The position numbers and the translations under genes are program-made. This document shows positions 2,451 through 45,685 of a stretch of DNA of 64,000 nucleotides, in pieces (positions within the stretch are counted from its first letter, which is position 1; the number at the start of each line of letters is the position of its first letter). The notes under the pieces are model-generated. The model was not told the origin of the DNA. It saw only the letters and a program-made list of their open reading frames with translations, and did no database searches. Source of the stretch: Anthoceros angustus. Its lineage: Eukaryota; Plantae; Anthocerotophyta. The DNA lies in the NCBI GenBank assembly GCA_010909165.1, contig VJWM01000063.1, positions 62,001 to 126,000 of the forward strand, written 5' to 3'.

Positions 2451-2522
2451 AAATACCGCCTGCAATGCGCTCGCTAAAGGTGGTGTAGTATGCCAATTAC
2501 TTGGATATGCTACTACTCTCAG

Positions 2523-5417
2523 ATGGCCACTGTATGGCAACCGGATTCGTTCTGGACCCAACAAATTGGTGGGTGTACAGGGATTCTGCGAGGAGCTCCG
2601 GCTGATCTCACCTTAGGAGGCCAAGGTCGGGAAAACAACCATGTCTTCAGGTGCAGCATCGTTAGGAACCCAGCAATTCGTGGAGAATGGCCTGGGAATG
2701 GAGTTTCCAGCTATGGTGGTCCTCAGGAGCAGGGGCAGCAGCAGCAGCAGGAGCAGTTGTGGCGACAGTTTTTTCTGGACCCTGCAATGTGGTGGGATTA
2801 CAGGCGAGGTAAGACGAGCTCCCGTTCGCCTGACTTCCGACGTAAGGGGTCCGGCGAGGTCCTGTGGTTAAACAGCATGTTCAAGCCAGGGTGGGTGGAT
2901 GAGCAGCTTGTTTCTATGGATTTGCAAATGGGTCTTGGTGCCTCTCCTTCCACGTTGAGCTCTCCGGATAAACCTGAGCCTGGCAGGCGTGCAGGAACGG
3001 CGATGGGCGTCGCAACAGCTGTAACCGTGAGCACACTATGTGAGCAGGGGAAGCTTAGTGAGGCCGTCGGAGCCCTGGAATCTCTGGCGCAGATGGACTG
3101 TCCTATTTCTCGGTCTGTCTTTTACACTGTGCTGAAACTGTGTGCAGATAAGAAGGATCTGGTTTTGGGACGACGAGTTCATGATCTCACTGTCAAACTT
3201 GGGTATGAGTCAAGTACATATTTGGGGAATCATATCTTGCGGATGTATGTCCGTGGAGGTAGGCTGCAGGAGGCCATGGATGTGTTCACCAGGGTGGGAA
3301 AACCGGATGCTTTCATGTGGTTTTCCATCATATCCGCCCATGCTAAACATGGGAAACCTAATGAGGCTATAAAACTGTACTCTGAGATGCGTAGGGCAGG
3401 TGTGAAGGCCGATCCTCACGTCTACGTTGCAGCCCTTCAAGCTTGTGCATTGGCTGCGGACTTGGAATGCGGCCGGCAAGTGCACTGTGATGTGTTGCAC
3501 AGTGATATCGTTCCTAACTTGTTTGTTGGCAACTGCCTCGTGGACATGTATGCAAAATGTGGGGAACTGGAAGATGCACGCAGGGTTTTTGACAGCTTGG
3601 CCACAAAAGATGTGGTGACATGGAATGCCCTGATAGCTGGGTATGCAAATCATGGGCTTGGCCAAGAGGCGCTGGCTCTGTACGGAGAAATGGAGCAGGA
3701 GGGCCTGATTGCGGGAAACCATGTTACTTTTGCTTGCCTTCTGAAGGCCTGTGCAAGCTGTGGCGCCATACAGAAGGGCAGGCAGCTGCACACACAGATT
3801 GTGGAAACAGGACAGCTAGACAACGTACGGGTGGGCAACTGCCTGGTGGATATGTATGCAAAATGTGGCGAACTGGAAGATGCACGCAGGGTTTTTGACA
3901 GCTTGGCCACAAAAACTGTTGTGACATGGACAGCCCTAATAGCTGGGTATGCAAATCATGGACCAGAGGCGCTTGTCTGTATGGACAAATGGAGCAGGAG
4001 GGCCTGATTGCTGACCATGTTACTTTTGCTTGCCTTCTGAAGGCCTGTGCAAGCTGGTGCCCACAGAAGGGCAGCTGCACTCTGATTGTGGAAGAGGACT
4101 GCTGGACCGGTGGGCAACTGCCTGGTGGATATGTATGCAAAATGTGGCGAACTGGAAGATGCACGCAGGGTTTTTGACAGCTTGGCCACAAAAACTGTTG
4201 TGACATGGACAGCCCTAATAGCTGGGTATGCAAATCATGACCTTGGCCAAGAGGCGCTTATTCTGTATGGGAAAATGGAACAGGAGGGCCTACTTGTGGC
4301 TGACCATGTTACCTTTGCTTGCCTTCTGAAGGCTTGTGCAAGTGCTGGTGCCTTACAGAAGGGCAGACAGCTACACTCACAGATTGTGGACAGAGGCCAG
4401 TTAGATAACGTACTTGTGGGCAACGGTCTGGTGGACATGTATGCCAAATGTGGCAAACTGGAAGATGCACGTGGGGTTTTTGACAGCTTGGTCACAAAGG
4501 ATGTGGTGACATGGAATGCCCTGATAGCTGGGTGTGGAAGTTGTGATGAGGGTCACAAAGCACTAGCTTGGTTTGAGGAGATGTTGGTCACCGGTATTCA
4601 GCCAAATAGTGCCACTTTCACTTGCCTTTTAGGAGCTTGCAGTCATGCAGGACTGGTCGATGAGGGTCGCCAGCTCTTTGATTCCATGGTTGAACAGCAT
4701 GATGTCAAACCTGCTATTGAGCATTACAATTGCATGGTTGACCTCCTTGGCCGTGCAGGCCATTTGGATGAGGCGGAGGACATGCTATTATCATGTGACA
4801 GCCAAAGCAATACTCTGGGCTTGACGTCTTTGCTGAATGCCTGCAAAATTCACGGGGACATAGGGAGGGCCACCCGGTGTTTCCAAAGTCTCGTTAGACT
4901 GGAGCCTCAGTGTGCATCCGCATATATCCTCATGGCCAATGCGTATGCAGATGCTGGTAGGTGGAGCGATGTAGACAGGATTGAAAAACAGAGAATGGTA
5001 GCAGGAGCTAACAAGAAACCTGCAGTGGCGGGTATTGAGGTGAACAATCAGGTACATACATTTCTGGTGGGAGAAAAGAGGGACGATATTGCACTGAAGG
5101 TAGAGACCACGAATGCACGTCTGAAGCAGGAAGGGGGCCACGTACCACAGACAAAGTTGGTATTGAAGCCACTGTCTGAGAAGGAAAAGGAAGATGCGCT
5201 TTGTGGGCATGCTGAGAAGCTAGCTCTGGCGTTTGGTCTCTTGAACACTCCAAGTGGGACACCTCTGGTGGTAACAAAGAATCTACGCATGTGCAGTGAC
5301 TGCCATAGTTCCACCGAGATCATGTCAAGGGTCGAGAAGAGAGACATTGTTGTAAGGGATGGATACCGTGTGCATCGATTTGCAGCTGGGTCTTGCAGTT
5401 GTGAGGGTCGACCGTGA
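2523..5417 (+). CDS. PPR copy A: PDF motif + PLS-PPR + E1/E2 + DYW:KP (GRP-ending) putative U-to-C RNA editing factor; interrupted as assembled
   Basis: ATG at 2523 (MATVWQPD, shared by paralogs). PLS motifs (VVTWNALI / HVTFACLL / VGNCLVDMYAKCG). KKPAVAGIEV at about 5013, HAEKLA at 5208, CSDCH, CSCEGRP stop 5417. ORFs 2490-4007 and 4086-5417 are in the same frame, separated by a degenerate 279-bp extra triplet (3961-4239). Confidence 0.9.
2757..2909 (+). other. OSB-type PDF motif in copy A
   Basis: LWRQFFLDPAMWWDYRRGKTSSRSPDFRRKGSGEVLWLNSMFKPGWVDEQL matches the recalled OSB PDF pattern W..FF..P..WWDNR..K.....PDF..K..GE.LW......P.WV..QL. Confidence 0.85.
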
Positions 5418-5870
5418 GAAAAATGTAGAACTTAAATCTAAATTTATAATATTTTTGTCTCCAACACACTAATGTCATGATCCATGTTAATGGGCATGAT
5501 GCTTATAGAATGATCCATCTGTACGGGCAGGATGCTTATACAATCTATTACCGTTAAAATGATGCACATAGAATGCATCATCGCTCAAGTACACACATTA
5601 CAATCCTGCCAGGATTAATGCCATGCGAGTCTCTGCTTCCTAAAGGGCCGGTACTGATCTTGGGCCTTTAGCAAGCATCCTCTGCGGTATGTCTTGCTGT
5701 TTGCAAAGAGGCAGGCTTTTGATTTCAGATTTGGTGTCTTTGCCATCGGTCAACCGATAGACCGACTCCATGCTGGCCAAGGTGGTATGGTCATGCACAG
5801 TAACTAGGCATCCTACCCCGGTCTGCGCACTTTGTTGTGGTTCCCACCGTCCGAGAGAAGTGCCTGTAAG

Positions 5871-8794
5871 ATGGCCACAATATGGCAACCGGATCCATTG
5901 TGGACCCAACAAATATCTGAGTGTACAGGGATTCTACGAAGAGCTCCCGCTCACCTTAGCTCAGGGAGTCAGTCGCTGGCAAACAACCAAGCCTGCAGGT
6001 GCAGCAGTGCGAGGAACCCAGGTGTTTCGAGAGAATGGATGACTGTGAAAGGATTTCCCAGCGATGGTGGTCGGCAGGACCAGGATCAGGCCCAGGCCCA
6101 GGCCCAGGGCCAGGAGCAGGAGCAGGAGCTGTTGTGGCAACAATTCTTTCTGGACCCTGCCATGTGGTGGGATAACAGGCGAGGTAAGAAGAGCTCTCAT
6201 TGGCCTGACTTCCGGCGTAAGGGGTCCGGGGAGGTCCTCTGGTTAAACAGCATGTTCAAGCCAAGTTGGGTGGATGAGCAGCTCGTTTCTTTGGATATGC
6301 AGATGCGTCATGGTGTCTCTCCTTCCAAGTCGAGCTCTCCGGATGGGTCTGAGCCTGGCAGGCGTTCAGGATCGGAAATGGGAGTCGTAACGGCTGCAAC
6401 GGTGAGCACTTTATGTCAGCAGGGGAAGCTCACTGAGGCCGTTGGAGCCCTGGAATTTCTGGCGCAGAACGACTGTCCTGTCTCTCACTCTCTTTTTTAT
6501 ACTGTGCTAAAACTGTGTGTAGCTAAGGGGGATCTGGTGGTGGGGCGACGAGTTCATGATCTCACTGTCAAGCTTGGGTATGAGTCAAGTACATTTTTGG
6601 GGAATCATATCTTGCGGATGTATGCAGGTGCAGGTAGGCTGCAGGAGGCCATGGATGTGTTCACCAGGGTGGGAAAACCGGATGCTTTCATGTGGTTTTC
6701 CATCATATCCGCCCATGCTAAACATGGGAAACCTAATGAGGCTATACAACTGTACCATGAGATGCGTATCTGCGGTGTACAGCCGGATGCTCACGTCTTT
6801 GTAGCAGCACTGCAGGCTTGTGCATTTGCTGCGGACTTGGACACTGGCAGAAAAGTCCACTTTGATGTGTTGCGCAGTGGGATTCCTACAAACTTGTTTG
6901 TGGGCAGTTGCCTGGTTGACATGTATGCAAAGTGTGGCGAACTGGAAGATGCACGACGGCTTTTTGACAGCTTGACAACCAAAAATGTGGTGACATGGAA
7001 TGCTCAGATTGCTGGGTATGCACAGCAAGGGCTCAGCCAAGAGGCCCTTGTTCTGCATGAACGAATGGAGCAGGAAGGCGTGATTGTGAGTAATCATGTT
7101 ACTTTTGCTTGCCTTCTGAAGGCTTGTGCAAGCGCTGGTGCCTTACAGAAGGGCAGGCAGCTGCACTCACAGATTGTGGAAAGAGGACATCAAAGCAACA
7201 TACTGGTGGGCAACTGCCTGGTGGACATGTATGCAAAATGTGGAGAACTAGAAGCTGCACACAGGGTTTTTGACAGCTTGCCCTCAAAGGATGTGGTGAC
7301 ATGGAATGCCCTGATAGCTGGATATGCCAACCATGGGCTGGGTCAGGATGCGCTTGTTCTGTACGCACAAATGGAGCAGGAGGGCCTGATTGTGGCTGAC
7401 CATGTTACTTTTGCTTGCCTTCTGAAGGCCTGTGCAAGCACTGGTGCCTTACAGAAGGGCAGGCAGCTGCACTCACAGATTGTGGAAAGAGGGCAACTGG
7501 GTGATATAGTGGTGGCCAACTGCCTGGTGGACATGCAAAATGTGGTGAACTGGAAGATGCACGCCAGGTTTTGACAGCACACAAAGGATGTGGTGACATG
7601 GAATGCCCTGATTGCTGGGTATGCACAGCAAGGGCTGGGCCAAGAGGCTTGTTCTGTATGAATCAATGGAGCAGGAGGGGCTGATTGTGGGTAACCATGT
7701 TACTTTTGCTTGCCTTCTGAAGGCCTGCAAGCACTGGTGCCTTACAGAAGGGCAGGCAGCTGCACTCACAGATTGTGAAAGAGGACTGCTGGATAACATG
7801 TTGGCAACTGCCTGGTGGACATGTATGCAAAATGTGGTGAACTGGAAGATGCACGCCAGGTTTTGACAGCACACAAAGGATGGTGACATGGAATGCCCTG
7901 ATATCTGGCTGTGGTACTTGCGATGAAGGACACAAAGCACTAGCTTGTTTTGAGGAGATGTTAATTGCTGGTGTCCAGCCTGATGATGCCACTTTTACGT
8001 GCCTTTTAGTAGCATGCAGTCATGCAGGACTGGTGAATGAGGGTCGCAGGCACTTTCATTCCATGGCGGAACAGCATGGCGTCAAACCTACTGTTGAGCA
8101 TTACAATTGCATGATAGATCTTCTTGGGCGTGCAGGACTTTTAGATGAGGCAGAAAACATGCTACTATCATGTGAGAGCCGAAGTAATGTTGTGGGGTTG
8201 ACATCTTTGCTGAATGCCTGCAAGAGTCACGGGGATATAGAGAGGGCAGCTCGGTGTTTTGAAAGTCTGGTTAGACTGGAGCCTCAGTGTGCATCCGCTT
8301 ATGTGCTCATGGCCAATACCTATGCGGATGCAGGTAGGTGGACCGATGTAGACAGGATTGAAACACAGAGATTGGTAGCAGGAGCTAACAAGAAACCTGC
8401 AGTGGCGGGCATTGAGGTGAAGAATCAGATACATACATTTGTGGTGGGAGAGAAGAGAGATGATATCGTGCTGAAGGTAGAGAGCACAAATGCACGTCTG
8501 AAGCAGGAAGGGGGCCACGTACCACACACACAGTTGGTGTTGAAGCCACTGTCTGAGAAGGAAAAGGAAGATGCGCTTTGCGGGCATGCTGAGAAGCTAG
8601 CTCTTGCGTTTGGTCTTTTGAACACTCCCAGTGGCACACCTTTGGTGGTAACAAAGAATCTACGCATGTGCAGTGACTGCCATAGTTCCACGGAAATCAT
8701 GTCAAGGGTTGAAAAGAGAGACATTGTTGTAAGGGATGGATACCGTGTGCATCGATTCGCAGCCGGTGCTTGTAGTTGTAAGGGTCGACCGTGA
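5871..8794 (+). CDS. PPR copy B: PDF + PLS-PPR + E1/E2 + DYW:KP(GRP); interrupted as assembled
   Basis: MATIWQPD at 5871, PDF motif 6132-6284, PLS motifs, KKPAVAGIEV...HAEKLA...CSDCH...CSCKGRP stop 8794. Several small deletions in 7535-7880 break the frame. Confidence 0.9.
6132..6284 (+). other. OSB-type PDF motif in copy B
   Basis: LWQQFFLDPAMWWDNRRGKKSSHWPDFRRKGSGEVLWLNSMFKPSWVDEQL. Confidence 0.85.
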
Positions 8795-9099
8795 GACATG
8801 ACGTCCATGTTCACCTGACCCTGTGCTTGTAACCATCTCTTTCTTTGACGTCCATGACATGCGTACCTCCGTCCTTGCCCACCACAGCCGTCATATGATA
8901 CGGTTTGATACGCTCATATGTGAATACAGATGAAAACCGTATGTATGCGCATACGGTTTCTGTCCATGTGTGACATCTGTCATCCGCATTCTTCTTGCAT
9001 TCAAGTCTTCCGGATTCGGGCACGTCGGAGCCAGCACGCCTGGACGTCCTGCCATACTGTGGAAAATTCGACTCTTCTGCCGACAGCGGTCCCTGAACG

Positions 9100-12000
9100 A
9101 TGGCCACAGCATGGCAACCGGACCCGTTGTCGACCCAACAAATTGGTATGTGTTCAGGGATTCTACCAGGAGCTCCGGCTCATCTCATCTTAGGCAGTCA
9201 TTCCCTGGCAAACAGAGCGTCCAGGTGCGGGAGTGTAAGGAGCCCGGCACTTTCAGTTCCGAGAAAATTTGTGGGTGGGGACGGGTTTCCCAGCGATGGT
9301 CGTTGCCAGGAGCTGGAGCACTTGTGGCAACAATTTTTTCTGGACCCTTCCATGTGGTGGGACAACAGACGAGATAAGAAGAGCTCCCGTTCGCCTGACT
9401 TCCGGCGTAAGGGGTCCGGCGAGGTCCTGTGGTTAAACAGCATGCTCAAGCCAGCTTGGGTTGATGAGCAGCTTGTCTCCTTGGATATGCAGATGGGTCG
9501 TGGTGCCTCTCCTCCCGAGACGAACTCTCCGGATACGTCTGAACCTGGCAGGCGTGCAGGATCAGAAATGGCTGTCGTTACTGCTGTAACCGTGAGCGCG
9601 TTATGTCAGCAGGGGAAGCTCTCTGAGGCCGTTGAAGCGCTGGAATCTCTAGCGCAGACAGGCCCTGCTATATCTCTGTTTTGCACTGTGCTGAAACTGT
9701 GTACAGCTAAAAAGGATTTGGTTGTGGGGCGACGAGTTCATGATCTTAGTGTCAAACTTGGGTACGAGTCGGACGCATACTTGGGGAACCATATCTTGCG
9801 CATGTATGCGGGTGGAGGTCGGCTAGAGGAGGCCATGGATGTGTTCACCAGGGTAGGCAAACCAGATGCCTTCATGTGGTTCCATAATCTCTGCACATGC
9901 TAAACATGGGAAACCTAATGAGGCCATACAACTGTACCATGAGATGCGTAGGTCAGGAGTGAAGGCGGATGCTCACGTCTTGTAGCTGCCCTTCAAGCTT
10001 GTGCATTTGCCGCCGACTTGGAATCTGGCAGAAAAGTGCACTGTGATGTGTTGCACAGTGGCATTCCTACTAACTTGTTTGTTGGCAACTGCCTGGTGGA
10101 CATGTATGCAAAATGTGGCAACTGAAGATGCACGCCAGGTTTTGACAGCATGGCACAAAGGATGTGGTGACATGGAATGCCCTGATATCTGGGTATGCAA
10201 AATGTGGTGAACTGAAGATGCACGCCAGGTTTTGACAGCATGGCACAAAGGATGTGGTGACATGGAATGCCCTGATGCTGGGTATGCACAGCAAGGGCTC
10301 GGACATGAGGCTTGTCTGTATGACAAATGGAGGAGGAGGGCCTGATTTGGCTGACCATGTTACTTTTGCTTGCCTTCTGAAGGCCTGTGCAGCACTGGTG
10401 CCTTACAGAAGGGCAGGCAGCTGCACTCACAGATTGTCAAAAGAGGACTGCTGGATATAGTGTTGGGCAACTGCCTGGTGGACATGTATGCAAAATGTGG
10501 TGAACTGGAAGATGCACGCCAGGTTTTGACAGCTTGGCCACAAAGGATGTGGTGACATGGAATGCCCTGATTGCTGGGTATGCACAGCAAGGACTCGAAG
10601 AGGCGCTTGTGTATGGACAAATGGAGCAGGAGGGCCTGATTTGGCTAACCATGTTACTTTTGCTTGCCTTCTGAAGGCCTGTGCAAGCACTGGTGCCTTA
10701 CAGAAGGGCAGGCAGCTGCACTCACTGATTGTGGAAAGAGGACTGCTGGATAACGTAGTGGTGGGCAACTGCCTGGTGGACATGTATGCAAAATGTGGTG
10801 AACTGAAGATGCACGCCAGGTTTTGACAGCTTGCACAAAGGATGTGGTGACATGGAATGCCCTGATAACTGGGTATGCACAGCAAGGGCTTGGAGAGGCG
10901 CTTGTGTATGGACAAATGGAGGAGGAGGGCCTGATTTGGCTGACCATGTTACTTTTGCTTGCCTTCTGAAGGCCTGTGCAAGCACTGGTGCCTTACAGAA
11001 GGGCAGGCAGCTGCACTCACTGATTGTTGAAAGAGGACTGCTGGATAACGTTTGGTGGCAACTGCCTGGTGGACATGTATGCAAAATGTGGTGAACTGGA
11101 AGATGCACGCCAGGTTTTTGACAGCTTGGCACAAAGGATGTGGTGACATGGAATGCCCTGATTGCTGGGTATGCACAGCAAGGCTGGCCAAGAGGCGCTT
11201 GTTCTGTATGGACAAATGGAGGAGGAGGCCATTTGGCTGACCATGTTACTTTTGCTTGCCTTCTGAAGGCCTGTGCAAGCACTGGTGCCTTACAGAAGGG
11301 CAGGCAGCTGCACTCACAGATTGTTGAAAGAGGACTGCTGGATAACGTGGTGGGCAACTGCCTGGTGGACATGTATGCAAAATGTGGTGAACTGGAAGAT
11401 GCACGCCAGGTTTTTGACAGCATTGGCCACAAAGGATGTGGTGACATGGAATGCCTGATTGCTGGGTATGCACAGCAAGGACTCGGCCAAGAGGCGCTTG
11501 TTCTGTATGGACAAATGGAGGAGGAGGCCATTTGGCTGACCATGTTACTTTTGCTTGCCTTCTGAAGGCCTGTGCAAGCACTGGTGCCTTACAGAAGGGC
11601 AGGCAGCTGCACTCACAGATTGTGAAGAGGACTGCTGGATAACATGGTGGTGGGCACTGCCTGGTGGACATGTATGCAAAATGTGGTGAACTGGAAGATG
11701 CACGCCAGGTTTTGACAGCATGGCAAAGGATGTGGTGACATGGAATGCCCTGATTGCTGGGTATGCACAGCAAGGACTCGGCCAAGAGGCACTTGTTCTG
11801 TATGGACAAATGGAGCAGGCCTCATTTTGGCAGACCATGTTACTTTTGCTTGCCTTCTGAAGGCCTGTGCAGGCACTGGTGCCTTGCAGAAGGGCAGGCA
11901 GCTGCATTTGCAGATTGTCAAAAGAGAACTGCTGGATAATGTAGTGTTGGGCAACTGCCTGGTGGACATGTATGCAAAATGTGGTGAACTGGAAGATGCA

Positions 12001-13858
12001 CGCCAGGTTTTTGACAGCTTGGCCACAAAGGATGTGGTGACATGGAATGCCCTGATAGCTGGGTATGCACAGCAAGGACTCGGCCAAGAGGCGCTTCTTC
12101 TGTATGGACAAATGGAGCAGGAGGGCCTGATTTTGGCTGACCATGTTACTTTTGCTTGCCTTCTGAAGGCCTGTGCAAGCACTGGTGCCTTACAGATGGG
12201 CAGGCAGCTGCACTCACAGATTGTGAAGGACTGCTGGATAATGTAGTGTTGGGCAACTGCCTGGTGGACATGTATGCAAAATGTGGTGAACTGGAAGATG
12301 CACGCAGGTTTTGACAGCTTGGCCAAAGGATGTGCTGACATGGAATACTCTGATATCTGGGTATGCACAGCATGGACGCGGCCAAGAGGCACTTGTTCTT
12401 TACGGACAAATGGAGCAAGAAGTACTCATTTTAGCTGACCATGTTACTTTTGCTTGCCTCCTAAAGGCCTGTGCAGGCACTGGTGCCTTACAGAAGGGCA
12501 GGCAGCTGCACTCACAGATTGTCGAAAGGAGACTGCTAGATAATGTAGTGTTGGGCAACTGCCTGGTGGACATGTATGCAAAATGTGGTGAACTGGAAGA
12601 TGCACGCTAGGTTTTTGACAGCTTGGTGACAAAGGATGTGGTGACGTGGAATGCCCTGATAGCTGGGTATGCACAGAAAGGACTTGGCCAAGAGGCACTT
12701 GTTCTGTATGGACAAATGGAGCAGGAGGGCCTGATTTTGGCTAGCCATGTTACTTTTGCTTGCCTTCTGAAGGCCTGTGCAAGCACTGGTGCCTTACAGA
12801 AGGGCAGCCAGCTGCACTCACAGATTGTTGAAAGAGGACTGCTGGATAATGTAGTGTTGGGCAATTCCCTCGTGGACATGTATGCAAAATGTGGCAAACT
12901 GGAAGCTGCACGCCGGGTTTTTGACAGCTTGGCCACAAAGGATGTGGTGACATGGAATGCCCTGATAGCTGGGTATGGTGCTAACGATGATGGTCACCAA
13001 GCCCTAGTTTGTTTTGAGGAGATGTTAGTTGCCGGTATTCAGCCTGATGATGCTACTTTTACTTGCCTTCTAGCAGCATGCAGTCATGAGGGATTGGTCC
13101 ACAAGGGTCGCAATCTGTTTGATTCCATGGCTGAACAGCATGGCATCAAACCTACCGTTGAGCATTACAATTGCATGATTGATCTTCTTGGGCGTGCAGG
13201 CCACTTAGATGAGGCAAAGAAGATGCTATTATCATGTGAGAGCCAAAATAACGTTGTGGGCCTGACGACTTTGTTGAATGCCTGCAAAAGTCACGGGGAT
13301 ATAGAGAGGGCGTCGTGGTGTTTTGAAAGCATTGTAAGGCTGGAGCCCCAGGAGGCGCCAGCATATGTGCTCATGGCGAATGCCTACGCAGATGCAGGTA
13401 GGTGGGCCGATGTGGACAGGATTGAAACACAGAGAAGGGCAGCAGGAGCTAACAAGAAACCTGCAATGGCGAGCATTGAGGTGAATAAGCAGATACATCG
13501 ATTTCTGGTGGGTGAAAGGAGAGAGGATATTGCGGTTAAGGTAGAGAGCACAAATGCACGCATGACGCAGGAAGGAGGCCACGTACCCCAAACGAAATTG
13601 GTGTTGAAGCCGCTAGGTGAGAAGGAAAAGGAAGATGCGCTATGTGGGCATGCTGAGAAGCTAGCTTTGGCGTTCGGTCTCTTGAACACGCCGAGTGGCA
13701 CACCTCTGGTGGTAACCAAGAATCTGCGTATGTGCCTTGACTGCCACAGTTCCACAGAGGTCATGTCAAGGCTTGAACGGAGAGACATTGTTGTAAGGGA
13801 TGGGTACCGTGTGCATCGATTCGCAGCTGGTTCTTGCAGTTGTAAGGGTCGACCGTGA
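9100..13858 (+). CDS. PPR copy C: PDF + greatly expanded PLS array + E1/E2 + DYW:KP(GRP); heavily frameshifted as assembled (possible pseudogene or assembly error)
   Basis: MATAWQPD at 9100, PDF motif 9322-9474, many indels from about 9880 to 12300, in-frame TAG at 12608. Clean C-terminal ORF 12623-13858 with KKPAMASIEV, HAEKLA, CLDCH, CSCKGRP. Confidence 0.85.
9322..9474 (+). other. OSB-type PDF motif in copy C
   Basis: LWQQFFLDPSMWWDNRRDKKSSRSPDFRRKGSGEVLWLNSMLKPAWVDEQL. Confidence 0.85.
10080..12960 (+). repeat. Tandem array of about 10 near-identical ~300-bp P-L-S triplets
   Basis: The anchor gacatgtatgcaaaatgtgg recurs near 10100, 10480, 10780, 11070, 11370, 11670, 11965, 12270, 12570 and 12875, plus a short internal re-duplication at about 10190-10270. 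Confidence 0.9.
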
Positions 13859-14686
13859 GAATAATGTAGTCCTCAAGTGTGGTCCTGTCCTACATGATTT
13901 TGTGTTGCGAGCAGGCTTGTGATGAGGGCAAGTGCGTGGGCAACGGGCATCACCATCGTGTGGGAAATGGGGCAGCATAACCTAATATTGCTCTCAATGG
14001 TTTTTGAGAGTTCTGATCAAAAGAAGGTAGTACATCCTAGTGCACTGTACAAAGTGAGCAAACTAACATACTTCTGCTTGTATGTTTCTGAGGGTCTAGA
14101 GCATGCAAACGCTTGGAGAGCCTGCCCAATCAGGTATTGCTGTCAGGGTCTCAACCAAACAACGAGATTGACTCAGCCTTTTAGAACCAAGCATTTGTCA
14201 AGCTCTGCCAGAATGCCACCACATCCGTATCACATGTGCATATAAATGGACGTCCATGCTCACTCCTAGAGTACTGTATTCTGCCATTTTCATCCACTTA
14301 TCATGTGTATGCTATGTGAGAGCACCTCCTTGCCCTGTGTTACGAGCTTCGAAAAAGTTGACATCCACATCGTGAGTCTGCAGGCAGCTCACAAGATTTG
14401 GGAGACTTTCAGCGCATGTCTTATCAGCTCATAGAGACCTAGTACAAGATTATGGCATTGTGTCATTTCACTCAACATGCCCTCAAGGCAAACATCAAAT
14501 CAGGTGCGTGGACTCCGTCCATGTAGGCCCGGGATACCATATTCTCCTCTGCCAGCTTCGCCTTGCTGTTGCTCGACCCGCGTGTTTCATTTCTTTACGA
14601 TGGCGCTGCACTGCGCTTTGTTAGAGTGATTTAGTCATGCACATCACGTAAGCATGCTGCTACTGTCCGAGAGCGCTGCCTGCACG

Positions 14687-17433
14687 ATGGCCACTCTATG
14701 GCAACCGGATTCGTCCTGGACCACAAAACTTGGTGGGTGTACAGGGATTCTACAAGGAGCTCCTGAAGAACACACAGTAGGAATTCAAGGTCTGGCAATC
14801 AACAATGTCTCCAGGTGCAGCAGTGTAAGGAATCCACCACTTCGGAGAGAATCGATGGCTGGGAAAGGATTTCCCAGCAACGGCGGTCGCCAGGAGCAGG
14901 AGGAGGATCAGGAGCTGTTGTGGCGACAATTCTTTCTGGACCCTGCCATGTGGTGGGATAACAGGCGAGGTAAGAAGGGTTCCCGTTCGCCTGACTTCTG
15001 GCGTAAGGGCTCCGGTGAGGTCCTCTGGTTAAACAGCATGTTCAAGCCAGCTTGGGTGGATGAGCAGCTCGTTTCCTTGGATATGCAGATGGGTCATGGC
15101 GCCTCGCCTTCCAAGTCGAGCTCTCCGGATAAGCCTGAGCCTGGCAGGCGTGCAGGAACGGGAATGGGCGTCGTAACGGCTGCAAATGTGAGGACCTTGT
15201 GTCAGCAGGGGAAGCTTAGTGAGGCCGTTGAAGCGCTGCAATCTTTGGCGCAGACAGACTCTGGTATTTCTCGGTCTCTGCTGTATACTGTGCTCAAACT
15301 GTGTGCTGCTAAGAAGGATCTGGTGGTGGGGCGACGAGTTCATGATCTCACTGTCAAACTTGGGTACGAGTCAAATACATATTTGGGGAACCATATCTTG
15401 CGCATGTATGCGGGTGGAGGTAGGCTACAAGAGGCCATGGATGTGTTCACCAGCGTGAGGAAACCAGATGCTTTTATGTGGTTTTCCATAATCTCCGCAC
15501 ATGCTAAACATGGGAGACCGAATGAGGCTATACAATTGTACCATGAGATGCGGAGCTCAGGTCTGAAGGCGGATGCCCACGTCTTTGTAGCAGCACTTCA
15601 AGCTTGTGCATTGGCTGCGGACTTGGAATCTGGCAGGAAAGTGCACTGTGATGTGCTTGACAGTGCCATTGTTCCGAACTTGTTTGTTGGAAACTGCCTG
15701 GTGGACATGTATGCAAAATGTGGGGAACTTAAAGATGCACGCAGGGTTTTTGACAGCTTGGCCATAAAGGATGTGGTGACATGGACGTCCCTGATAGCTG
15801 GGTATGCAAATCATGGGCTCGCCCAAGACGCCCTTGCTCTGTATGAAAAAATGGAGCAGGAAGGCCTGATTGTGGCTGACCATGTTACTTTTGTTTGCCT
15901 TCTGAAGGCCTGCACAAGCGCTGGTGCGTTACAGAAGGGCAGGCAGCTGCACAAACAGATGGTGCAAAGAGCGCAGCTAGATAACATTCTTGTGGGGAAC
16001 TGCCTGGTGGACATGTATGCCAAGTGTGGTGAACTGGAAGATGCACGTAGGGTTTTTGACAGCTTGGCCTCAAAGGATGTGGTGACATGGAATGCCCTGA
16101 TTGCTGGGTATGCACAGCAAGGGCTTGGCCAAGAGGCGCTTGTACTGTATGGACAAATGGAGCAGCAGGGCCTTATTGTGGCTGATCATGTGACTTTTGC
16201 TTGCCTTCTGAAGGTGTGTGCAAGCGCTGGTGCCTTACAGAAGGGAAGGCAGCTGCACTCACAGATTGTGGAAAGGGGAAAGCTAGATAGCATACTTGTG
16301 GGCACTTGCTTGGTGGACATGTATGCAAAGTGTGGCAAACTGGAAGAAGCACGCTGTGTCTTTGACAGCTTGGCTGCAAAGGATGTGGTGACTTGGACAG
16401 CCCTGATAGCTGGGTGTGGTTCTTGTGATGAAGGTCACAAAGCACTAGCCTGTTTTGAGGAGATGTTAGTCGCAGGTATTCAGCCCAATGATACCACATT
16501 CACTTGCGTTTTAGGAGCATGCAGTCATGAGGGACTGGTGGATGAGGGTCGCAGACACTTTGATTCCATGTTGGAAAAGCATGGCGTCAAGCCTACTGTT
16601 GAACATCACAATTGCATGATTGATCTTCTGGGGCGTGCAGGCCATTTAGATGAGGCAGAGAAGATACTCCTATCGAGTGAGAGCCAAAGCAATGCTGTGG
16701 GGCTGACGTCTTTGCTGAATGCCTGCAAAAGCCATGGGGATATAGAGAGAGCAAAGCGGTGTTTTGAAAGTCTGGTTAGACTGGAGCCTCAATGTGCATC
16801 CGCTTATGTGCTCATGGCCAATGCCTATGCAGATGCAGGTAGGTGGACTGATGTGGACAGGATTGAATCACAGAGAATGGTAGCAGGAGCTAACAAGAAA
16901 CCTGCAGTGGCAGGCATTGAGGAGCAAGTGCATCCGCTTATGTGCTCATGGCCAATGCCTATGCAGATGCAGGTAGGTGGACTGATGTGGACAGGATTGA
17001 ATCACAGAGAATGGTAGCAGGAGCTAACAAGAAACCTGCAGTGGCAGGCATTGAGGTAAAGGAGCAAGTGCATACATTTGTGGTGGGAGACAGCAGAGAT
17101 GATGTTGCTCTGATGGTAGAGAGCACGAATGCACGTCTGAAGCAGGAAGGAGGCCACGTACCACAAACAAAGTTGGTGTTGAAGCCACTGTCTGAGAAGG
17201 AAAAGGAAGATATGCTTTGCGGGCATGCTGAGAAGCTAGCTCTGGCGTTTGGTCTATTGAACACACCGAGCGGCACACCTTTGGTGGTAACGAAGAATCT
17301 ACGCATGTGCAGTGACTGCCACAGTTCCACAGAGATCATGTCAAGGGTTGAGAATAGAGACATTGTTGTAAGGGATGGGTACCGTGTGCATCGATTTGCA
17401 GCTGGTTGTTGCAGTTGTAAGGGCCGACCGTGA
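14687..17433 (+). CDS. PPR copy D: PDF + PLS-PPR + E1/E2 + DYW:KP(GRP); clean except for a 134-bp duplication or candidate intron (870 aa if spliced)
   Basis: MATLWQPD at 14687 (upstream in-frame ATG at 14654), PDF motif 14918-15070, uninterrupted PLS array. ORF 16942-17433 carries KKPAVAGIEV, HAEKLA, CSDCH, CSCKGRP. Confidence 0.92.
14918..15070 (+). other. OSB-type PDF motif in copy D
   Basis: LWRQFFLDPAMWWDNRRGKKGSRSPDFWRKGSGEVLWLNSMFKPAWVDEQL. Confidence 0.85.
16794..17056 (+). repeat. 134-bp-period tandem duplication of the E2/KP-coding segment; candidate GT-AG intron 16839-16972
   Basis: gtgcatccgcttatgtgctc...gcaggcattgagg occurs at 16794 and again at 16928. Donor CAG|GTAGGT at 16839, acceptor TGCAG|G at 16972. 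Confidence 0.9.
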
Positions 17434-18099
17434 GAATGAAGAAGAATGAAAAACTCCTGAGGTGGAACATTGAAAGTAGCCGACAGGACGAAGAAAATAC
17501 CAGAGCTGGCCTTCACTTTTGTTACAGTCGTTTTGCGAGGACAACTCCAGTAGCAAAGCTGGACTGGGTAGATGACACAACATTCTGTTGGCACACTGCA
17601 CATTCTTTAGCTGCGCGGGGTAGGTGCCCCTTTCCTGTTTGGTGTTCTCCTGCAGACCTTGGAGTCCAAGCTTCGCAGGTCAACCTTCCTTCCAGCAGAA
17701 TTTACAACAGCAGCAGTCTGATGAGAGTATTGACAGGATTTTTGCTTTCTGTGCTCCCTGAATGATTTGCTTGCCAGGTAAAGCGTTGGCACATGCACAC
17801 TGCCGACATAAACTCGTTACGGAATCCAGTCTTTCCCATCAAGTCATCTTTCACCTTCTTGGCTGCAGCCTCTTTGTGAACCTGGCTTTATTTTAGCCCG
17901 TTCAAACCGTGGACGTTTTCTCTCAACGCGTTCCAGGAGCGTTCTGACAGGAGACCTCCTCGGGCCTGTGAGCACTGTGGTCGAACTTGCTCTAAATCAG
18001 GCCGATTTGAATGGATCCATCCTGCGTCTGGCATCACAGAAGGGATCAATGAGGATGGGGAGGCAGGCCTGGCAGACTCTCTGTCCGGAATGCTGAATG

Positions 18100-19327: not shown

Positions 19328-22054
19328 ATGAGTTCAAAGAATGCAGGTTTGGCAAACAACGAAGCCGCGAGCTGCACCACCTTTGCAAGCAAGCCAGTCT
19401 GTGCAGCCAGATGGGTGGCTGGAGACGGGCTCTTCTGGCAACAGTTCGTTCTGGACTCCAGGGTTTGGTGGAATCGTAGGCAGGGGGGCCCTGAACAATC
19501 TCTGCAAGCCGGTTGGATGGATGGATGCGCAGCTGATGGGCTTGCTGCACCTCCGTCCAAGTGGAGCGTGGGGCATGATCTTGGCCAAGGCAGACATGCA
19601 GGATACGAGAGATGGGTGTCGGCTGAAACCGTTAGCAAACTGTGCCGGCAGGGGCAGCTCGTTGAGGCCGTGGGCGCTCTGGGAGTTCTGGTGCACAGAG
19701 ACTCTCCAATCTCGGAATCTGTATTTTACACGGTGCTCAAAGTGTGTGTGGCTAAGAAGGATCTGCGTCTAGGCCGCCGTGTTCACGGTCTGAGCGTGAA
19801 GAAAGGGTATGAGTCGGGAACGTTCTTGTGCAATCACATTCTGCGAATGTATGCTTCTCATGGCAGGTTAGAAGAAGCTATGGATGTGTTCGCAAGGGTT
19901 GTGAAACCAGATGCCTTTACTTGGTCTGCTATGATCTCTGCTCATGTCAAGCATGGACAAGACAGGCAGGCTGTGGAGCTGTATCACAGGATGCGCAGGT
20001 CAAGTGTGAAGCCGGATGGACATGTGTTTGTAGCAGCTCTTCAGGCTTGTGCGAGGGCAGCAGACTTGAAGTCGGGGCAGGAGGTGCATGCTGATGTGTT
20101 GGCTGCTGGCGTTGAGCGTGATCTGTTTGTTGGAAGTTGCTTGGTGGACATGTATGCGAAGTGTGGCAGCTTGGAAGCTGCTCAAAGAGTGTTTGATAGT
20201 CTAGGGCGGAAAAGCGTGGTAACGTGGAGTTCCATGATAGCCGGATATTCCCAGCAGGGGATGGGGCAGAAAGCCCTTCGTCTGTACAGGGATATGCAAG
20301 AGGAAGGTACTGTTGCACCTGATGCTGTCACATTTGTGTGCCTCCTGCAGGCATGTGCAAGTCTGGGCCCCCCTGCCTTGGATGATGGAAAGCAGCTTCA
20401 TGCTCAAATTAGGGAACAAGGGCTTGAAAAGGATGTGTTTGTAGGCAGCAGTTTGGTAAACATGTATGCAAAGTGTGGCGATCTAAGGGATGCTCGGAGT
20501 GTGTTTGATGGCCTGGTTCACAAGAACGTGGTGACATGGAATGCTATAATAGCGGGATATGCCCAGCAGGGCATGGGGCAGGAAGCCCTTGCTCTTTTCA
20601 GGGCTATGCAGGAAGACAGCATGGCTGCACCTGATGCTGTGACGTTTGTGTCCGTCCTGCAGGCATGTGCAAGTGTTGGCACGAAAGCTTTGGAGAAGGG
20701 AAAGCAGCTTCATGTGCAGATTAGAGACCGAGGGCTTCAAGGTGATGGGTTCGTAGCCAACAGCCTGGTAAACATGTACGCAAAGTGCGGCAGCTTGGAG
20801 GATGCTCAGGGCGTGTTTGATGGACTCGGACAGAAGAATGTCGTCACGTGGAATGCTATGATTGCAGGATATTCCCAGCAGGGTATGGGCCGGGAAGCTC
20901 TTCTCCTTTACAACGCCATGCAAGAAGAAGGCATCGTTGCACCTGGTTCTGTGACATTTGTGTGCCTCCTGCAGGCATGTGCAAGTCTGGGCACCCCAGC
21001 TTTGGAGAAGGGAATGCAGCTTCATGCGCAAATTAGAGAACAAGGACTGCAAGCTGATGTATTTGTCGCCAGCAGTTTGGTGAACATGTATTCAAAGTGT
21101 GGCAGCCTGGAGCATGCTAGGGGCGTGTTTGACAGACTTGTGGAAAAGAATGTCGTGACGTGGAGTGCCATGATAGCAGGATATTCCCACCAAGGCATGG
21201 GCCAGGAAGCCCTTCATCTTTACAGGTCCATGCAAGACCAGGGCATTGTCGAGCTCGATTCTGTAACATCTGTGTGCCTCCTTCAGGCATGTGCAAGCGT
21301 GGCAGCTTTGCATGTGGGAAGACAGCTTCATGCGCAGATTGAAGATCAAGGACTTCACGCTGATGCCAGTGTCGGCAATAGTTTGATAAACATGTATGCA
21401 AAGTCGGGAAGCATGGTTGATGCACAGCAGGTCTTTGATGAGTTGCCAAAAAGAGATGTTTTCACCTGGAGTGCACTGATTGCCGGATACACCCGACAAG
21501 GCGACAGTAAGGAGGTCTTTGACCTGGTTCACAGAATGAGAGAGGATGGCTTGCAGCCAGACGGCATCACATTCCTCAGTGTACTAACAGTTTGTAGTCA
21601 CACGGGTCTAGTGGACAAGGGGCGAGAATACTTTGAGGCTATGAGCAAGCAGTATGGTATCACTCCCACCACAGACCACTACACCTGCATGGTGGATCTT
21701 CTGGGCCGTGCAGGGCAACTGGATGAGGCACTAGCTTTAGCAAGGACAATGCCTCTACAACCTGATGCTGCCGTTTGGCACACCCTAATGGGCTCTTGTC
21801 AGAAGTGGAACAACGTGCAGGTTGGACGCCAAGCCTTCGACGAAGCAGTGAAGTTAGACAAGAAAGACGCCGCTGCTTATGTGTTGATGTCGAACATTTA
21901 CACCAGTACCCAAATGTGGGAGCAGGCACACGAGTTGCAGGCGCGAAGAAAAAGAATCGAGGCGTGGAAGCAGCCAGGCCAAAGCTGGTGGACAGACATG
22001 GACGGACTGGTGCACAGCTTCTCTGTTCTGGATAAGAACACATCTCAGGAGTAA
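19328..22054 (+). CDS. PPR copy E: intact 908-aa PLS-PPR protein, E1/E2/E+ with WW-type PG box, no DYW domain, N-terminal truncated PDF motif
   Basis: Continuous ORF with four ~105-aa PLS triplets, P2-L2-S2, E1/E2 and ending WKQPGQSWWTDMDGLVHSFSVLDKNTSQE*. The N-terminus has FWQQFVLDSRVWWNRRQG. Confidence 0.92.
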   Translation: MSSKNAGLANNEAASCTTFASKPVCAARWVAGDGLFWQQFVLDSRVWWNRRQGGPEQSLQAGWMDGCAADGLAAPPSKWSVGHDLGQGRHAGYERWVSAETVSKLCRQGQLVEAVGALGVLVHRDSPISESVFYTVLKVCVAKKDLRLGRRVHGLSVKKGYESGTFLCNHILRMYASHGRLEEAMDVFARVVKPDAFTWSAMISAHVKHGQDRQAVELYHRMRRSSVKPDGHVFVAALQACARAADLKSGQEVHADVLAAGVERDLFVGSCLVDMYAKCGSLEAAQRVFDSLGRKSVVTWSSMIAGYSQQGMGQKALRLYRDMQEEGTVAPDAVTFVCLLQACASLGPPALDDGKQLHAQIREQGLEKDVFVGSSLVNMYAKCGDLRDARSVFDGLVHKNVVTWNAIIAGYAQQGMGQEALALFRAMQEDSMAAPDAVTFVSVLQACASVGTKALEKGKQLHVQIRDRGLQGDGFVANSLVNMYAKCGSLEDAQGVFDGLGQKNVVTWNAMIAGYSQQGMGREALLLYNAMQEEGIVAPGSVTFVCLLQACASLGTPALEKGMQLHAQIREQGLQADVFVASSLVNMYSKCGSLEHARGVFDRLVEKNVVTWSAMIAGYSHQGMGQEALHLYRSMQDQGIVELDSVTSVCLLQACASVAALHVGRQLHAQIEDQGLHADASVGNSLINMYAKSGSMVDAQQVFDELPKRDVFTWSALIAGYTRQGDSKEVFDLVHRMREDGLQPDGITFLSVLTVCSHTGLVDKGREYFEAMSKQYGITPTTDHYTCMVDLLGRAGQLDEALALARTMPLQPDAAVWHTLMGSCQKWNNVQVGRQAFDEAVKLDKKDAAAYVLMSNIYTSTQMWEQAHELQARRKRIEAWKQPGQSWWTDMDGLVHSFSVLDKNTSQE

Positions 22055-22342: not shown

Positions 22343-22849
22343 TCCTGAAATGCTGCCATAGCCACAAGCTAGCAGGCCGGTGGCAGCAGTCACAAAACCC
22401 AGCGTTCATCGTTCAGGTCGGTAAGCGTTACATTTATGTCCACCAGGCAAGTGCCTACAAGCATGGTTTTTGTGTCCCCATTTCGCAGTCAGTGAGTGCA
22501 GTGCAGCTGCTCGGCCTCCTTCTGTGAGGCACAAGCACTTGCACACGTCATCTAGAGGCAAGGAAAGTTTCGCTGCCAGCCACCGCTCCGTGCCAGGCTG
22601 CGCAGCCTGCAGCAGCCTGTGAGCTTGGTCGGAGAGCCGGAGATGAAGAGGAGAGACAGATTGCGAGCCATCATGTCCACATTGGATGCCGATGGTGAGC
22701 TGGATGAGCTCGTGCATGCGCAGGAAGCGACTGGGGAAGCACTGGTCGCTGCAGCAGATGAGACCGGCGAGGAGGAGCATATGTAGACCGAGGCCACGGC
22801 TTTGCAGATCTTTTACACGACAGGGAGCACTGATTTGTGGACGTCGCGT

Positions 22850-23200
22850 ATGCGCTTGTGTTTTGAAGAAATGTGTTGTGAAAAAGGGATCTTTGTTGTG
22901 CAAAGGTCGCCGTGTGCATACTTTAACGGTGCGAACGAGGTATGAGTTGAATACGTTCTTGTGCAAACACACGCTATGGATGTGTGCTTCTCATGGCAGG
23001 ATTAGATGAAGCGATTGAGGGGGTCTTCGGGGATGCAGAACCGGATGCCTTCATGTGGTCCTCCAGGATTTCGGCCCATGTTAAACGGGGGCAGGACAAG
23101 CAGGCCGTAGAGCTATACCATGGGATGCGCTGGCCAAGGGTGAACCTTGTGGAAACGTGTTTGCGGGCAGCCCTTCAGACTTGGGCGTGGGGGCAGACTT
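22850..23200 (+). pseudogene. Truncated, frameshifted paralog of the N-terminal PPR motifs of copy E
   Basis: LKKCVVKK...GRRVHTLTV...YELNTFLCKH...ASHGR and EPDAFMWSSRISAHVKRGQDKQAVELYHGMR align with the corresponding copy E motifs. Confidence 0.75.
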
Positions 23201-41480: not shown

Positions 41481-42399
41481 ATTTTTAAATGGTATAGAGT
41501 ATAGACTAGTTTAATAGTTGATGCGCAACACTAATTAAGTGAGACAGCTCTCACTTTGGAAGGTTATGGTATGTCATATTTGGGAATGGAATCGATATCA
41601 TTTTTATTATGGCCGATTATTGCAACAAGTCCTTGAACAGCAAGCAAGCGAATTGCTCAATTGCAGGAGAAGAAAAACCAGGGAAAGAAGAGGGCTACGG
41701 ACGAAAAAGGGGAAGAAAGTGGAGGAATGGGCCTCACCCTCTAAGAACTAGGTCCCACTTCAACAAAAAGAGGAGAGGTTAGGAATCAAACGGGCTGCAC
41801 ATGCACGTCTTCCAACATCTGCCTAGTGAAACATTAGAGTTGAAATACTAATTTGGACACTGTCTGGAGATGATGACCCGGATTTGCTAGCGAACAAACT
41901 CGTCAACCCTTGCTCTGGCGTGAAGGGAGACATTGATACTGACTTGATGTCTTCACAACGTTGTGGAAGAGGTTTTACCTTGCGCCACACAAACATATAG
42001 GAGGTTCACAAGAATACAAACAGTTTAGCAACAGAAGAGAACATCTGCAGCGACGATCAAGTGACTTGGCTACGTAGGCGATCAAAAGACCTGTAGAACG
42101 CCTACAGCAGCGCTCAAGTGGTTAGCGATGTGGGTGTTTAAATTTCTGGTAAAGATACTCGCAAATGCGCTTATGAATCTGGCGTTCAGGCTGTTGGTGG
42201 TGATTCACACCACCTGGGACTGATGATCCGGCGCCCATATGGTGATTATTGCCTGTGCAAACGATTGCATTCGTAAGGTTGCTTGCAAGCAGCTGCTGTT
42301 GATGTAAAGAAGTTGGAAAAGGTAGTCGATAAAGATGGTTTTGAGCTGTGGTGCTAACTGATTGAAGCCTCCACAGGATACAGGGCAAATTTTGCGAAG

Positions 42400-43500
42400 C
42401 TCAGAGATTATGTGGGCAGGGGAGGTTGGGAGAGGCTGTGGATGCTCTGCTTGTGATGGGTCAGACGGGCTGCCTGCCATCGGTGCAGACTTATTTTGAG
42501 CTGTTGCAGGCGTGCCGAAAACAGAAGGCCTTGCATTAGGCCAAGAGAGTGCATGCTCACATTGTAGAGAATGGACTTGAGAGAACACATTTCTGAGTGA
42601 AATTGCGGTGAATGTGTTTGTCAAGTGTGGGGATCTGCCAGATGCACTCCTGCTATTTGACAAACTCTCCCCGACGGCCTTATCTTGGGCCGCACTCATT
42701 TCAGGATATGCAAACGCTGGACAAGGTCAGAAGGCGCTCGTGACCTACAAAGAGATTTAAAAGCAAGGCGTTGAACCGAACAAGTATACGTTTGGTGTTG
42801 TTCTCCAAGCTTGTGGCATTCCTGTGGACCTGACAGTGGGGAAGCAGGTTCGTGCTGAGCTCGTCAGACGCAATTGGGAGTCTGATTCCTTCCTGGGTAA
42901 GTGTCTGGTGGATATGACGTATGCAAAGTGTGGCATCATGGTGTTTTTGAGACGCTCTCAAAGCGTGATGTGGTGGTGTCATGGAATGATATGATTAGGG
43001 GCTATGTGAAGGATGGGAAGGGTGAGATAGCGATTAAACTCTACTTCCAAATGCAAGAGGAAGGCATGTACCCAGACAAATGGACAATCGTGAACGTGCT
43101 AAAAGCATGTATCAGTATATCAGCCAATGAAGAGGAGATGCTGATTGATGGGCAGCCTCTCAAAATGGGCTCTTTACGAAAGGGGAAGGCTTCTCATGCT
43201 GAAGTGGCCGAAAGAAATCTAGAAACTGATGTCTCTGTGACCAACTGTCTGGTTAACATGTATGCCAAATGTGCCAGCCTTCAAGATGCACGACAAGTAT
43301 TTGACGGATTTTCGCATGGGAACGTGGTGTTGTGGAAGACAATGATTGCAGGTTACTCTCACATCAGACTGGTGCATGTGAGCATAAAGTTGCAAAGCCT
43401 TTTCACCCTTTTCTTGCTGAAGACCAGATGAGCGTACATTTGTAAGCGTCTTGAAAGCATCAATCCGACAGCACATGCTTTGCATCCTTATCTTCCAGTA
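42400..43500 (+). pseudogene. Degenerate PLS-class PPR pseudogene
   Basis: GRLGEAVDALL, ELLQACRKQKAL..AKRVHAHIV, VVVSWNDMIRGY, VTNCLVNMYAKCASLQDARQVFD with multiple stops and frameshifts. Confidence 0.85.
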
Positions 43501-44409: not shown

Positions 44410-44461
44410 GTGTAAGTGACTGGAGGACGTGGGCTGCAGAGGCGAGAGGCGAGACCCAGTC

Positions 44462-45685
44462 ATGGCAGATGGTGATGACACCCATGAAAATAATATTGAG
44501 ATATGGAAGATTAAGAAGCTTATCAAGGCTTTGGAATCTGCACGTGGAAATGGTACCAGCATGATTTCTCTTATCATGCCGCCTGGGGATCAAATATCTC
44601 GAGTGATGAAGATGCTTGGTGATGAGCTTGGGACAGCGTCCAACATCAAGAGCAGGGTGAATCGGCAATCCGTGCTAGCTGCCATCGAATCACAAGCGAA
44701 GGGTTACATAGTGCCTCACTGGTTTTGTATGTCATTATTCGTCAATGATGAGGGAAAGGAAAAGAAGGTGACATTTCATTTTGAACCCTTCAAGACAATT
44801 AATACCTCCTTGTATTTGTGTGACAACAAATTTCATACGGAAGCTTTGAACGAGTTGCTAGAGTCGGATGATAAATTTGGCTTTATTATCATGAATGGAA
44901 ATGGTACTCTGTTTGGGACTCTTAGTGGAAATACTCGACGGGTGTTGCACAAATTTACCGTTGATTTGCCAAAGAAACACGGAAGAGGAGGACAGTCAGC
45001 CTTGCGATTTGCTCGCCTTCGAATGGAGAAACGTCACAACTATGTAAGAAAAGTTGCCGAATTAGCTACACAATTTTTTGTGAATCCCATCACCTCTCAG
45101 CTCAATGTCAATGGGCTTGTTCTTGCGGGGTCTGCGGATTTGAAGACAGAATTGAGCCAGTCAAATTTATTTGACCCAAGGCTTGAAGCCAAAGTGTTGA
45201 ATGTAGTGGATATTTGTTACGGGGGAGAAAATGGTTTCAATCAAGCCATAGAGCTCTCCTCAGAGATTTTATCAAATCTGAAATTCATCCAAGAACAAAG
45301 GTTGATTGGGAAATATTTCGAGGAGATAAGTCAAGATACTGGGAAATATGTATACGGTGTTGATGACACATTGGAAGCTTTAAAGACGGGAGCTGTTGAG
45401 ACTCTGATAGTATGGGAGAATTTGGAAGTTGATGGTTTTCACAATATATTGAAGATAAACAAGGAGCAAAAGCAAACTCAGGCAGAGCAAGAGGAACCTT
45501 CTCTGTTGGAATGGTTAGCTAACGAGTATAGGAGGTTTGGTTGTAGTCGACTTGAGTTTGTGACGAATAGATCTCCGGAGGGTTCCCAATTTTGTAAAGG
45601 CTTCGGAGGCATTGGAGGCATTCTTCGATATCGATTTGATATGAGAATGCTTGATCAATTATCTGACGAGGACGAATCCTACTAG
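44462..45685 (+). CDS. eRF1: Eukaryotic release factor 1 paralog, intronless, divergent (407 aa from ATG 44462)
   Basis: [74 protein letters not shown]; ORF open end to end. Confidence 0.93.

Follow-up and report, generated by a model that had tools for sequence, protein, structure and literature searches.

What is a putative single-strand-binding motif doing at the front of an RNA-editing enzyme? The question is raised by a 64,000-nucleotide stretch of the hornwort Anthoceros angustus (assembly GCA_010909165.1, contig VJWM01000063.1, positions 62,001 to 126,000), here called the window, which carries five tandem PLS-class PPR genes at 2.5–22 kb, all on the + strand. On sequence grounds the genes form a tandem array and encode organellar RNA-editing factors of the hornwort type, of the PLS class with E motifs and a DYW:KP domain of the GRP subgroup. 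Genes 1–4 each open with MAT.WQPD and close with an E motif and a DYW deaminase domain; between the presequence and the repeats they carry a motif of about 50 amino acids (aa). We hold with high confidence that this is the PDF motif of plant OSB proteins, joined here to a PPR-DYW protein. This PDF-PPR-DYW architecture is real and ancient, it is under selection, and it seems not to have been described. The features concerned are as follows (ORF, open reading frame; pLDDT, predicted local distance difference test score).

2523..5417, + strand: gene 1, with presequence, PDF, PLS array, E motif and DYW:KP(GRP)-type domain in that order
2757..2909, + strand: PDF motif copy 1, 51 aa (match to the OSB-derived profile at 2748–2924, 65.7 bits)
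5136..5417, + strand: DYW:KP-type domain of gene 1, ending CSCEGRP (Pfam DYW_deaminase, E 2.2e-33)
5871..8794, + strand: gene 2, architecture as gene 1 (ORFs, Pfam)
6132..6284, + strand: PDF motif copy 2 (OSB-derived profile, 63.1 bits)
9100..13858, + strand: gene 3, with a PDF at its start and a DYW domain ending CSCKGRP; PLS array altered, degenerate copy
9322..9474, + strand: PDF motif copy 3 (OSB-derived profile, 70.4 bits)
14687..17433, + strand: gene 4, the best-preserved copy; its DYW:KP-type ORF 16942–17433 ends CSCKGRP (ORFs, Pfam)
14918..15070, + strand: PDF motif copy 4, the one modelled (OSB-derived profile, 61.5 bits; pLDDT 90.5)
19328..22054, + strand: gene 5, a PLS-E PPR gene with a PDF remnant and no DYW domain within the ORF (ORF, Pfam)

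The motif has the consensus LW.QFFLDP.MWWD.RR.K...PDF.RKGSGEVLWLNSM.KP.WVDEQL. In a six-frame translation of the window, the regular expressions W..FFLDP.MWW and PDF.RK match at 2760/2829, 6135/6204, 9325/9394 and 14921/14990 only, all on the + strand. The first residue (L) accordingly lies at 2757, 6132, 9322 and 14918, exactly where a preliminary description of this DNA had placed the motif in the four genes. Compared over 57 aa, the other stretches are 88–89% identical to copy 4, and 44 columns are invariant across the four copies. Gene 5 keeps the first third of the motif only (LFWQQFVLDSRVWWNRRQ, 19433–19486), the PDF core being deleted.

There is no Pfam model for the PDF motif, and word-indexed homolog searches limited to the motif returned zero matches; an exhaustive profile search succeeded instead. 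A profile of the four window motifs, run against 1.84 billion representatives, retrieved 645 of them at E<=1e-3. Amongst the 153 proteins that were classified (the best 150 of the 645 and three cluster members), 66 show the architecture of OSB proteins, in which an SSB-like domain precedes one or more C-terminal copies of the motif; P0012 (Pfam SSB at 137–234 and three motifs) and P0038 are two of them. The reciprocal profile, built solely from 121 PDFs of such SSB-bearing proteins, finds the four window sites at 61.5–70.4 bits over positions 2–59 of 61, and elsewhere in the window just the gene 5 remnant and a negligible sub-zero match at 2546–2593. All 14 columns conserved at >=90% amongst 133 PDFs are retained in all four copies, P-D-F included, and the OSB-derived consensus ELWKDLFANPSEWWDNRKSKKNPKSPDFKHKETGEALWLNSSAPEWV can be set against the window motif LLWRQFFLDPAMWWDNRRGKKSSRSPDFRRKGSGEVLWLNSMFKPAWV. 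The conserved residues are mostly aromatic and basic. No Pfam SSB domain was found in any window ORF.

The predicted fold leads to the same family. AlphaFold2 models the gene 4 motif with a mean pLDDT of 90.5, as a helix, two short strands and a helix. In a Foldseek search of the Swiss-Prot section of the AlphaFold database (AFDB), the only significant matches to this model are Arabidopsis OSB1–4, and the match that follows has E=6. The comparison, in which the models are predicted on both sides, gives for OSB1 [184-245] a template modelling (TM) score by query of 0.88, a root-mean-square deviation (rmsd) of 1.4 Å and 43% identity; OSB2 [307-358], OSB3 [375-426] and OSB4 [293-342] are also matched, and across OSB1–4 identity is 35–43%, TM by query 0.73–0.88 and rmsd 0.9–1.4 Å. 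Provided that Swiss-Prot includes the reviewed Arabidopsis PPR proteins, none of these carries the PDF fold. A search of the AFDB clusters likewise returns OSB-like proteins, while no solved structure resembling the PDF was found by Foldseek against the PDB or by VIA-align (best Z 3.3). The preliminary description had identified the motif as an OSB PDF and had named a profile search and a fold comparison as the checks to make; both uphold it, with 61–70 bits in the one and a fold match limited to OSB1–4 in the other. Chance or low complexity as the source of the motif is ruled out by the reciprocal profile together with the fold match.

Modelling of residues 1–330 of the gene 4 product places the motif within the protein. 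Residues 1–64 are disordered (pLDDT 31–45), the PDF occupies residues 68–137 (pLDDT 89–96), a linker at residues 138–159 is again disordered (pLDDT about 45), and PPR helices begin at residue 165 (pLDDT above 90). Each product reads as a disordered presequence of about 65–88 aa, one PDF, a disordered linker of about 22–30 aa, the PPR superhelix, E motifs and the DYW:KP-type domain, and the order put forward earlier, with the motif between presequence and PLS array, is borne out by this model. As modelled, the PDF is shown as an independently folded domain, joined by a flexible tether to the PPR tract at its N-terminal end.

Is the motif maintained by selection? The ratio of non-synonymous to synonymous change (dN/dS, omega) was calculated by the Nei–Gojobori method, pooled amongst the four copies, so that the pairwise comparisons are non-independent. 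The lowest values of omega are those of the PDF (0.17), the E2-DYW region (0.19) and the first PPRs (0.24), and the highest those of the linker (0.65) and the presequence (0.75). dS is similar across these regions (about 0.23–0.44), and gene conversion is therefore no explanation of the low dN. The PDF is under purifying selection and its flanks are not. Comparison of 0.17 with 0.19 implies that constraint on the PDF equalled that on the catalytic domain during most of the period after duplication. The earlier remark that a conserved motif beside a variable linker hints at selection is thus substantiated (0.17 against 0.65–0.75 in the flanks). The confident predicted fold, the low omega and the position after a disordered, fast-evolving presequence together make it unlikely that the PDF belongs to a cleaved transit peptide.

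The other end of the four proteins has the pattern ...NKKPA[VM]A[GS]IE...CGHAEKLA...C[SL]DCH...C.GRP. Pfam matches PPR, E_motif and DYW_deaminase in genes 1–4 (DYW_deaminase E 2e-32 to 3e-35), and each has the marks of a PLS-class PPR-DYW protein: PPR repeats, an E motif, HxE (HAEKLA) and CxxC (C[SL]DCH). The DYW:KP class is defined by a KP box that replaces the PG box, and a terminal GRP marks one of two hornwort DYW:KP subgroups (PMC9478123). All four genes have the KP box KKPA[VM]A[GS]IE and end in C.GRP. The succession KP box, HAE, CxxC, GRP proposed for these genes is therefore seen in every one of them, and assignment of the C-terminal domains to the GRP subgroup of DYW:KP is supported by these sequence signatures. 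The best named homologs are from Diphasiastrum, at only ~45% identity. The closest unnamed homologs, P0192 (58% identity) and P0080, likewise end in GRP, and are intact PDF-PLS-E-DYW:GRP ORFs from other samples.

The fusion extends well beyond this locus. Amongst named proteins, PDF and PPR occur together in ferns (Adiantum, Ceratopteris and Pteridium), lycophytes (Selaginella and Diphasiastrum) and bryophytes (the peat moss Sphagnum and the liverwort Calypogeia). Amongst the 120 top-ranking PPR homologs of gene 4, 37 have N-terminal PDFs, from one to three each; many of the 37 are Diphasiastrum proteins with the canonical ending ...CSCGDYW, and many others are E-type PPRs without a deaminase. 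None of eight conifer or Ginkgo matches, a small sample, has a PDF. The preliminary description had tied the fusion to the DYW:KP clade of U-to-C editing. This link was rejected, because the PDF is found on many canonical DYW and E-type PPRs (from lycophytes, ferns, Sphagnum and a liverwort) and because at least one full-length GRP protein, P0170, is without it.

In a tree of 133 PDFs, linkage to PPR costs 2–3 label changes, against ~27 with shuffled labels. A tree constraining the PPR-linked PDFs, which cover hornwort-like samples, a liverwort, a moss, lycophytes and ferns, to one clade reached a likelihood above that of the free search (p-AU, the approximately unbiased test, 0.695); the alignment has 65 columns only, and the single clade is to be read as not rejected rather than shown. 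The sequence data are compatible with one ancient fusion, which is the simplest reading for the PPR-linked PDFs.

The PDF motif is a mobile module and is not confined to OSB proteins. Reviews hold PDF motifs to be restricted to green plants (PMC4166229). Proteins of the dinoflagellate Effrenium voratum (P0005 and its cluster mates) have as many as nine PDF repeats and are without a Pfam domain. PDF-like folds in the AFDB clusters also stand under A0A7S2HFR7 and A0A3M1NXI7, which we guess, from accession style alone, to be a protist and a metagenome entry. Angiosperm gene models include 13 PDF repeats alone (Kingdonia, P0001), PDFs with a kinesin motor (Coptis, P0057) and PDFs in a 1063-aa 'ICR2' (Striga, P0039); such architectures may reflect genuine fusion or the merging of separate models. 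In runs of several related organisms, the summed contig word depth of the PDF, PLS and DYW parts (14721–17502) is 10^2–10^3 times that of the unique flanks, a figure that is not a copy number; it suggests that the family is massively multicopy in these genomes, with many near-identical members.

Whether the four copies are still working genes is a separate matter, on which two further features bear.

3921..4200, + strand: damaged PLS unit of gene 1 (279 bp versus 306)
16794..17056, + strand: perfect tandem duplication in gene 4, 134 bp + 129 bp

In gene 1, ORFs 2490–4007 and 4086–5417 share one frame and are split by the single damaged unit, which contains three in-frame stops. This unit has nine private short deletions, 27 bp net, a loss by which the frame is regained; private substitutions are few, and its divergence from the gene 4 reference unit is about that of intact units. 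It may represent real decay or an unpolished patch of long-read assembly. In gene 2, the frame is lost across the last two PLS units (7296–7883), and the 3' ORF (7880–8794) lies in a different frame. The gene 3 array consists of ~9 units of 294–302 bp with many frameshifts (10167–12977). Frameshifted units of genes 2 and 3 have identical indels (e.g. ins1@273 and del2@277), both within and between the genes, which indicates inherited sequence and not random assembly error. Genes 2 and 3 look like pseudogenes. The roughly ninefold-amplified units of gene 3 and the last units of gene 2 also point to exchange between neighbouring dead arrays, by unequal crossing-over or by conversion.

In gene 4, a single ORF extends from the start across PDF, PLS array and E motif, and the sole interruption is the duplication. 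The sequence gcag/gtaggt at 16837–16846 recurs 134 nt downstream, so that AG/GT stands at equivalent positions of both copies of the duplication, and excision of a GT-AG intron of exactly 134 nt would restore the frame. From its sequence, this stretch could be spliced out. Contigs of the X1/X29 sample are identical to the window at 14400–14941 and 17407–17600 and are broken inside the repeats; no read or contig spans the 134-bp duplication. No DNA run had >0.2 of the words from the unique N-terminal stretch. Copies 2 and 3 have probably ceased to perform the function of the family; whether copies 1 and 4 still do so is uncertain.

What, then, might the PDF contribute to an editing factor? The PDF motif of AtOSB1 alone suffices for binding of single-stranded DNA (ssDNA) (PMC6963530), and OSB1 and OSB2 prefer ssDNA over double-stranded DNA (dsDNA) and RNA (PMC4166229); AtOSB2 is a tetramer (PMC6963530). 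Within the GRP subgroup, U-to-C activity is known for the designer editors KP2 and KP3 only; these have no PDF and convert U to C at 22–26% in E. coli (PMC9478123), and the PDF is thus not needed for catalysis. We propose that the tethered PDF would stand outside catalysis, as an accessory element that grips single-stranded nucleic acid irrespective of sequence, immediately 5' of the PPR footprint. Such a grip might raise affinity, lengthen residence time or prevent base-pairing at the site. A PPR tract binds RNA with its N-to-C axis along the 5'-to-3' direction; the N-terminus of the tract faces the 5' end of the RNA, and this is why the grip would lie upstream of the footprint. Taken as a whole, the explanation that combines the identity of the array, the architecture, an ancient fusion and an accessory grip is the one towards which we lean, by a little. 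Its specific mechanism, in which the PDF would grip the RNA itself, is our preferred reading, but we hold it tentatively and put it somewhat short of an even chance.

Several observations weigh against this explanation. None of the four genes has an uninterrupted frame from start codon to GRP, and the four editing enzymes of the preliminary description are, all of them, interrupted and not demonstrably functional. RNA reads of a related species did not map to these loci. The PDF-less designer editors and the natural GRP protein P0170 mean that any contribution of the PDF is accessory, and the reported preference of OSB proteins for ssDNA over RNA suits a DNA tether no less than an RNA grip. 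At the level of the locus, the chances are evenly poised that all four copies are dead pseudogenes, in which the conservation of the motif reflects selection before a recent inactivation and nothing is expressed. The stops and frameshifts that break the PLS arrays of genes 1–3, the frame-shifting duplication in gene 4, the indels common to units of genes 2 and 3 and the missing RNA support from related-species reads all agree with such an end. However, stops and frameshifts are absent from the N-terminal and E-DYW parts in every copy, where omega is 0.17–0.24; the damage to gene 1, one unit with short deletions and few private substitutions, resembles an unpolished long-read patch, and the duplication in gene 4 may have arisen in assembly or may be removed by splicing.

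For the family as a whole, the PDF might instead act as a nucleoid tether, binding organellar ssDNA (the displaced strand of a transcription bubble, R-loops or replication intermediates) and holding the editor near nascent transcripts for co-transcriptional editing. The only PDF biochemistry is ssDNA binding, preferred over RNA, the PPR-linked PDFs keep the conserved core of the OSB PDFs, and a long disordered linker would suit tethering; but these PDFs may be a separate clade with a changed preference, and editing factors without a PDF function in the same lineages. We consider this role unlikely, if by no means fanciful. A use in protein contacts, by which the PDF would oligomerize or dock to OSB or other PDF-bearing proteins and help as MORF contacts do in seed plants, would account for PDF arrays of up to 13 copies in varied architectures, for the tetrameric state of AtOSB2 and for the presence of PDF-PPRs, amongst sampled proteins, in seedless plants only. 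To our knowledge, the seedless plants with PDF-PPRs have no MORF proteins. The isolated AtOSB1 PDF nevertheless binds ssDNA, and the conserved residues are mostly of the aromatic and basic kinds expected for nucleic-acid contact, so that this role seems improbable. Hardly credible is a PDF that redirects the deaminase or aminase to ssDNA and edits organellar DNA: the ssDNA preference of OSB PDFs is all that speaks for it, whereas the choice of target is set by an RNA-reading PPR tract, and PDFs are found equally on canonical C-to-U editors and on E-type proteins lacking a deaminase. We know of no evidence of DNA editing in these organelles. A broader history can also be imagined, in which the PDF was an ancestral general module of land-plant editing factors, taken over a single time, in an early land plant, from a protein resembling OSB, coupling editors to nucleoid single strands co-transcriptionally and lost in seed plants when MORF-type helpers took their place; taken in its entirety, this history is unlikely.

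The remainder of the window contains further PPR gene fragments in several frames at 22686–23187 and 42396–43356, relics of the same PPR family. In addition, an uninterrupted ORF of 418 aa (44429–45685, + strand) matches eRF1 domains 1 (partial), 2 and 3 (E 4e-17 to 4.5e-41); this intronless eRF1/Pelota-like gene may be a retrocopy.

PPR-DYW factors are much studied, as the basis of organelle RNA editing and as programmable C-to-U and U-to-C tools, and in the literature consulted they are described as a PPR tract with E/DYW domains only. If the accessory-grip reading is right, a conserved N-terminal single-strand-binding module, shared by seedless land plants, would supply a component so far lacking from accounts of the natural editing machinery, and could explain affinity or the finding of nascent RNA in plants not known to have MORF helpers. 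The PDF would also be a simple add-on for designer editors.

In comparison with known systems, the nearest relatives of the motif are the OSB proteins, which, as summarised in PMC6963530 and PMC4166229, have the same ~50-aa module as the window PDF. OSB proteins, however, have one to three PDFs at the C-terminus, after an SSB-like oligonucleotide-binding (OB) fold, whereas the window genes have a single N-terminal PDF before the PPR array and no SSB domain; judged by these sequences, the window genes are not OSB proteins. Accessory fusions such as RRM-PPR, MORF-PPR and RanBP2 Znf-PPR (PMC13386178) likewise place an extra nucleic-acid- or protein-binding module on PPR repeats. The same kingdom-wide fusion survey of 2026 contains zero occurrences of OSB or PDF; there being no Pfam model, surveys based on domains would miss a PDF-PPR fusion. 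Full-text searches confined to the open literature yielded no description of a PDF-PPR architecture but only OSB reviews or unrelated papers, and to that extent the preliminary view that the architecture is undescribed stands. The closest counterparts of the proteins themselves are the hornwort PPR-DYW:KP GRP proteins and the KP2/KP3 editors derived from them, with PLS array, E motifs, the KP box KKPAVAGIE, HAE...CxxC and terminal GRP as in the window (PMC9478123). The description of the GRP subgroup given there mentions no N-terminal PDF, and KP2 and KP3 are without one, whereas the window genes have it.

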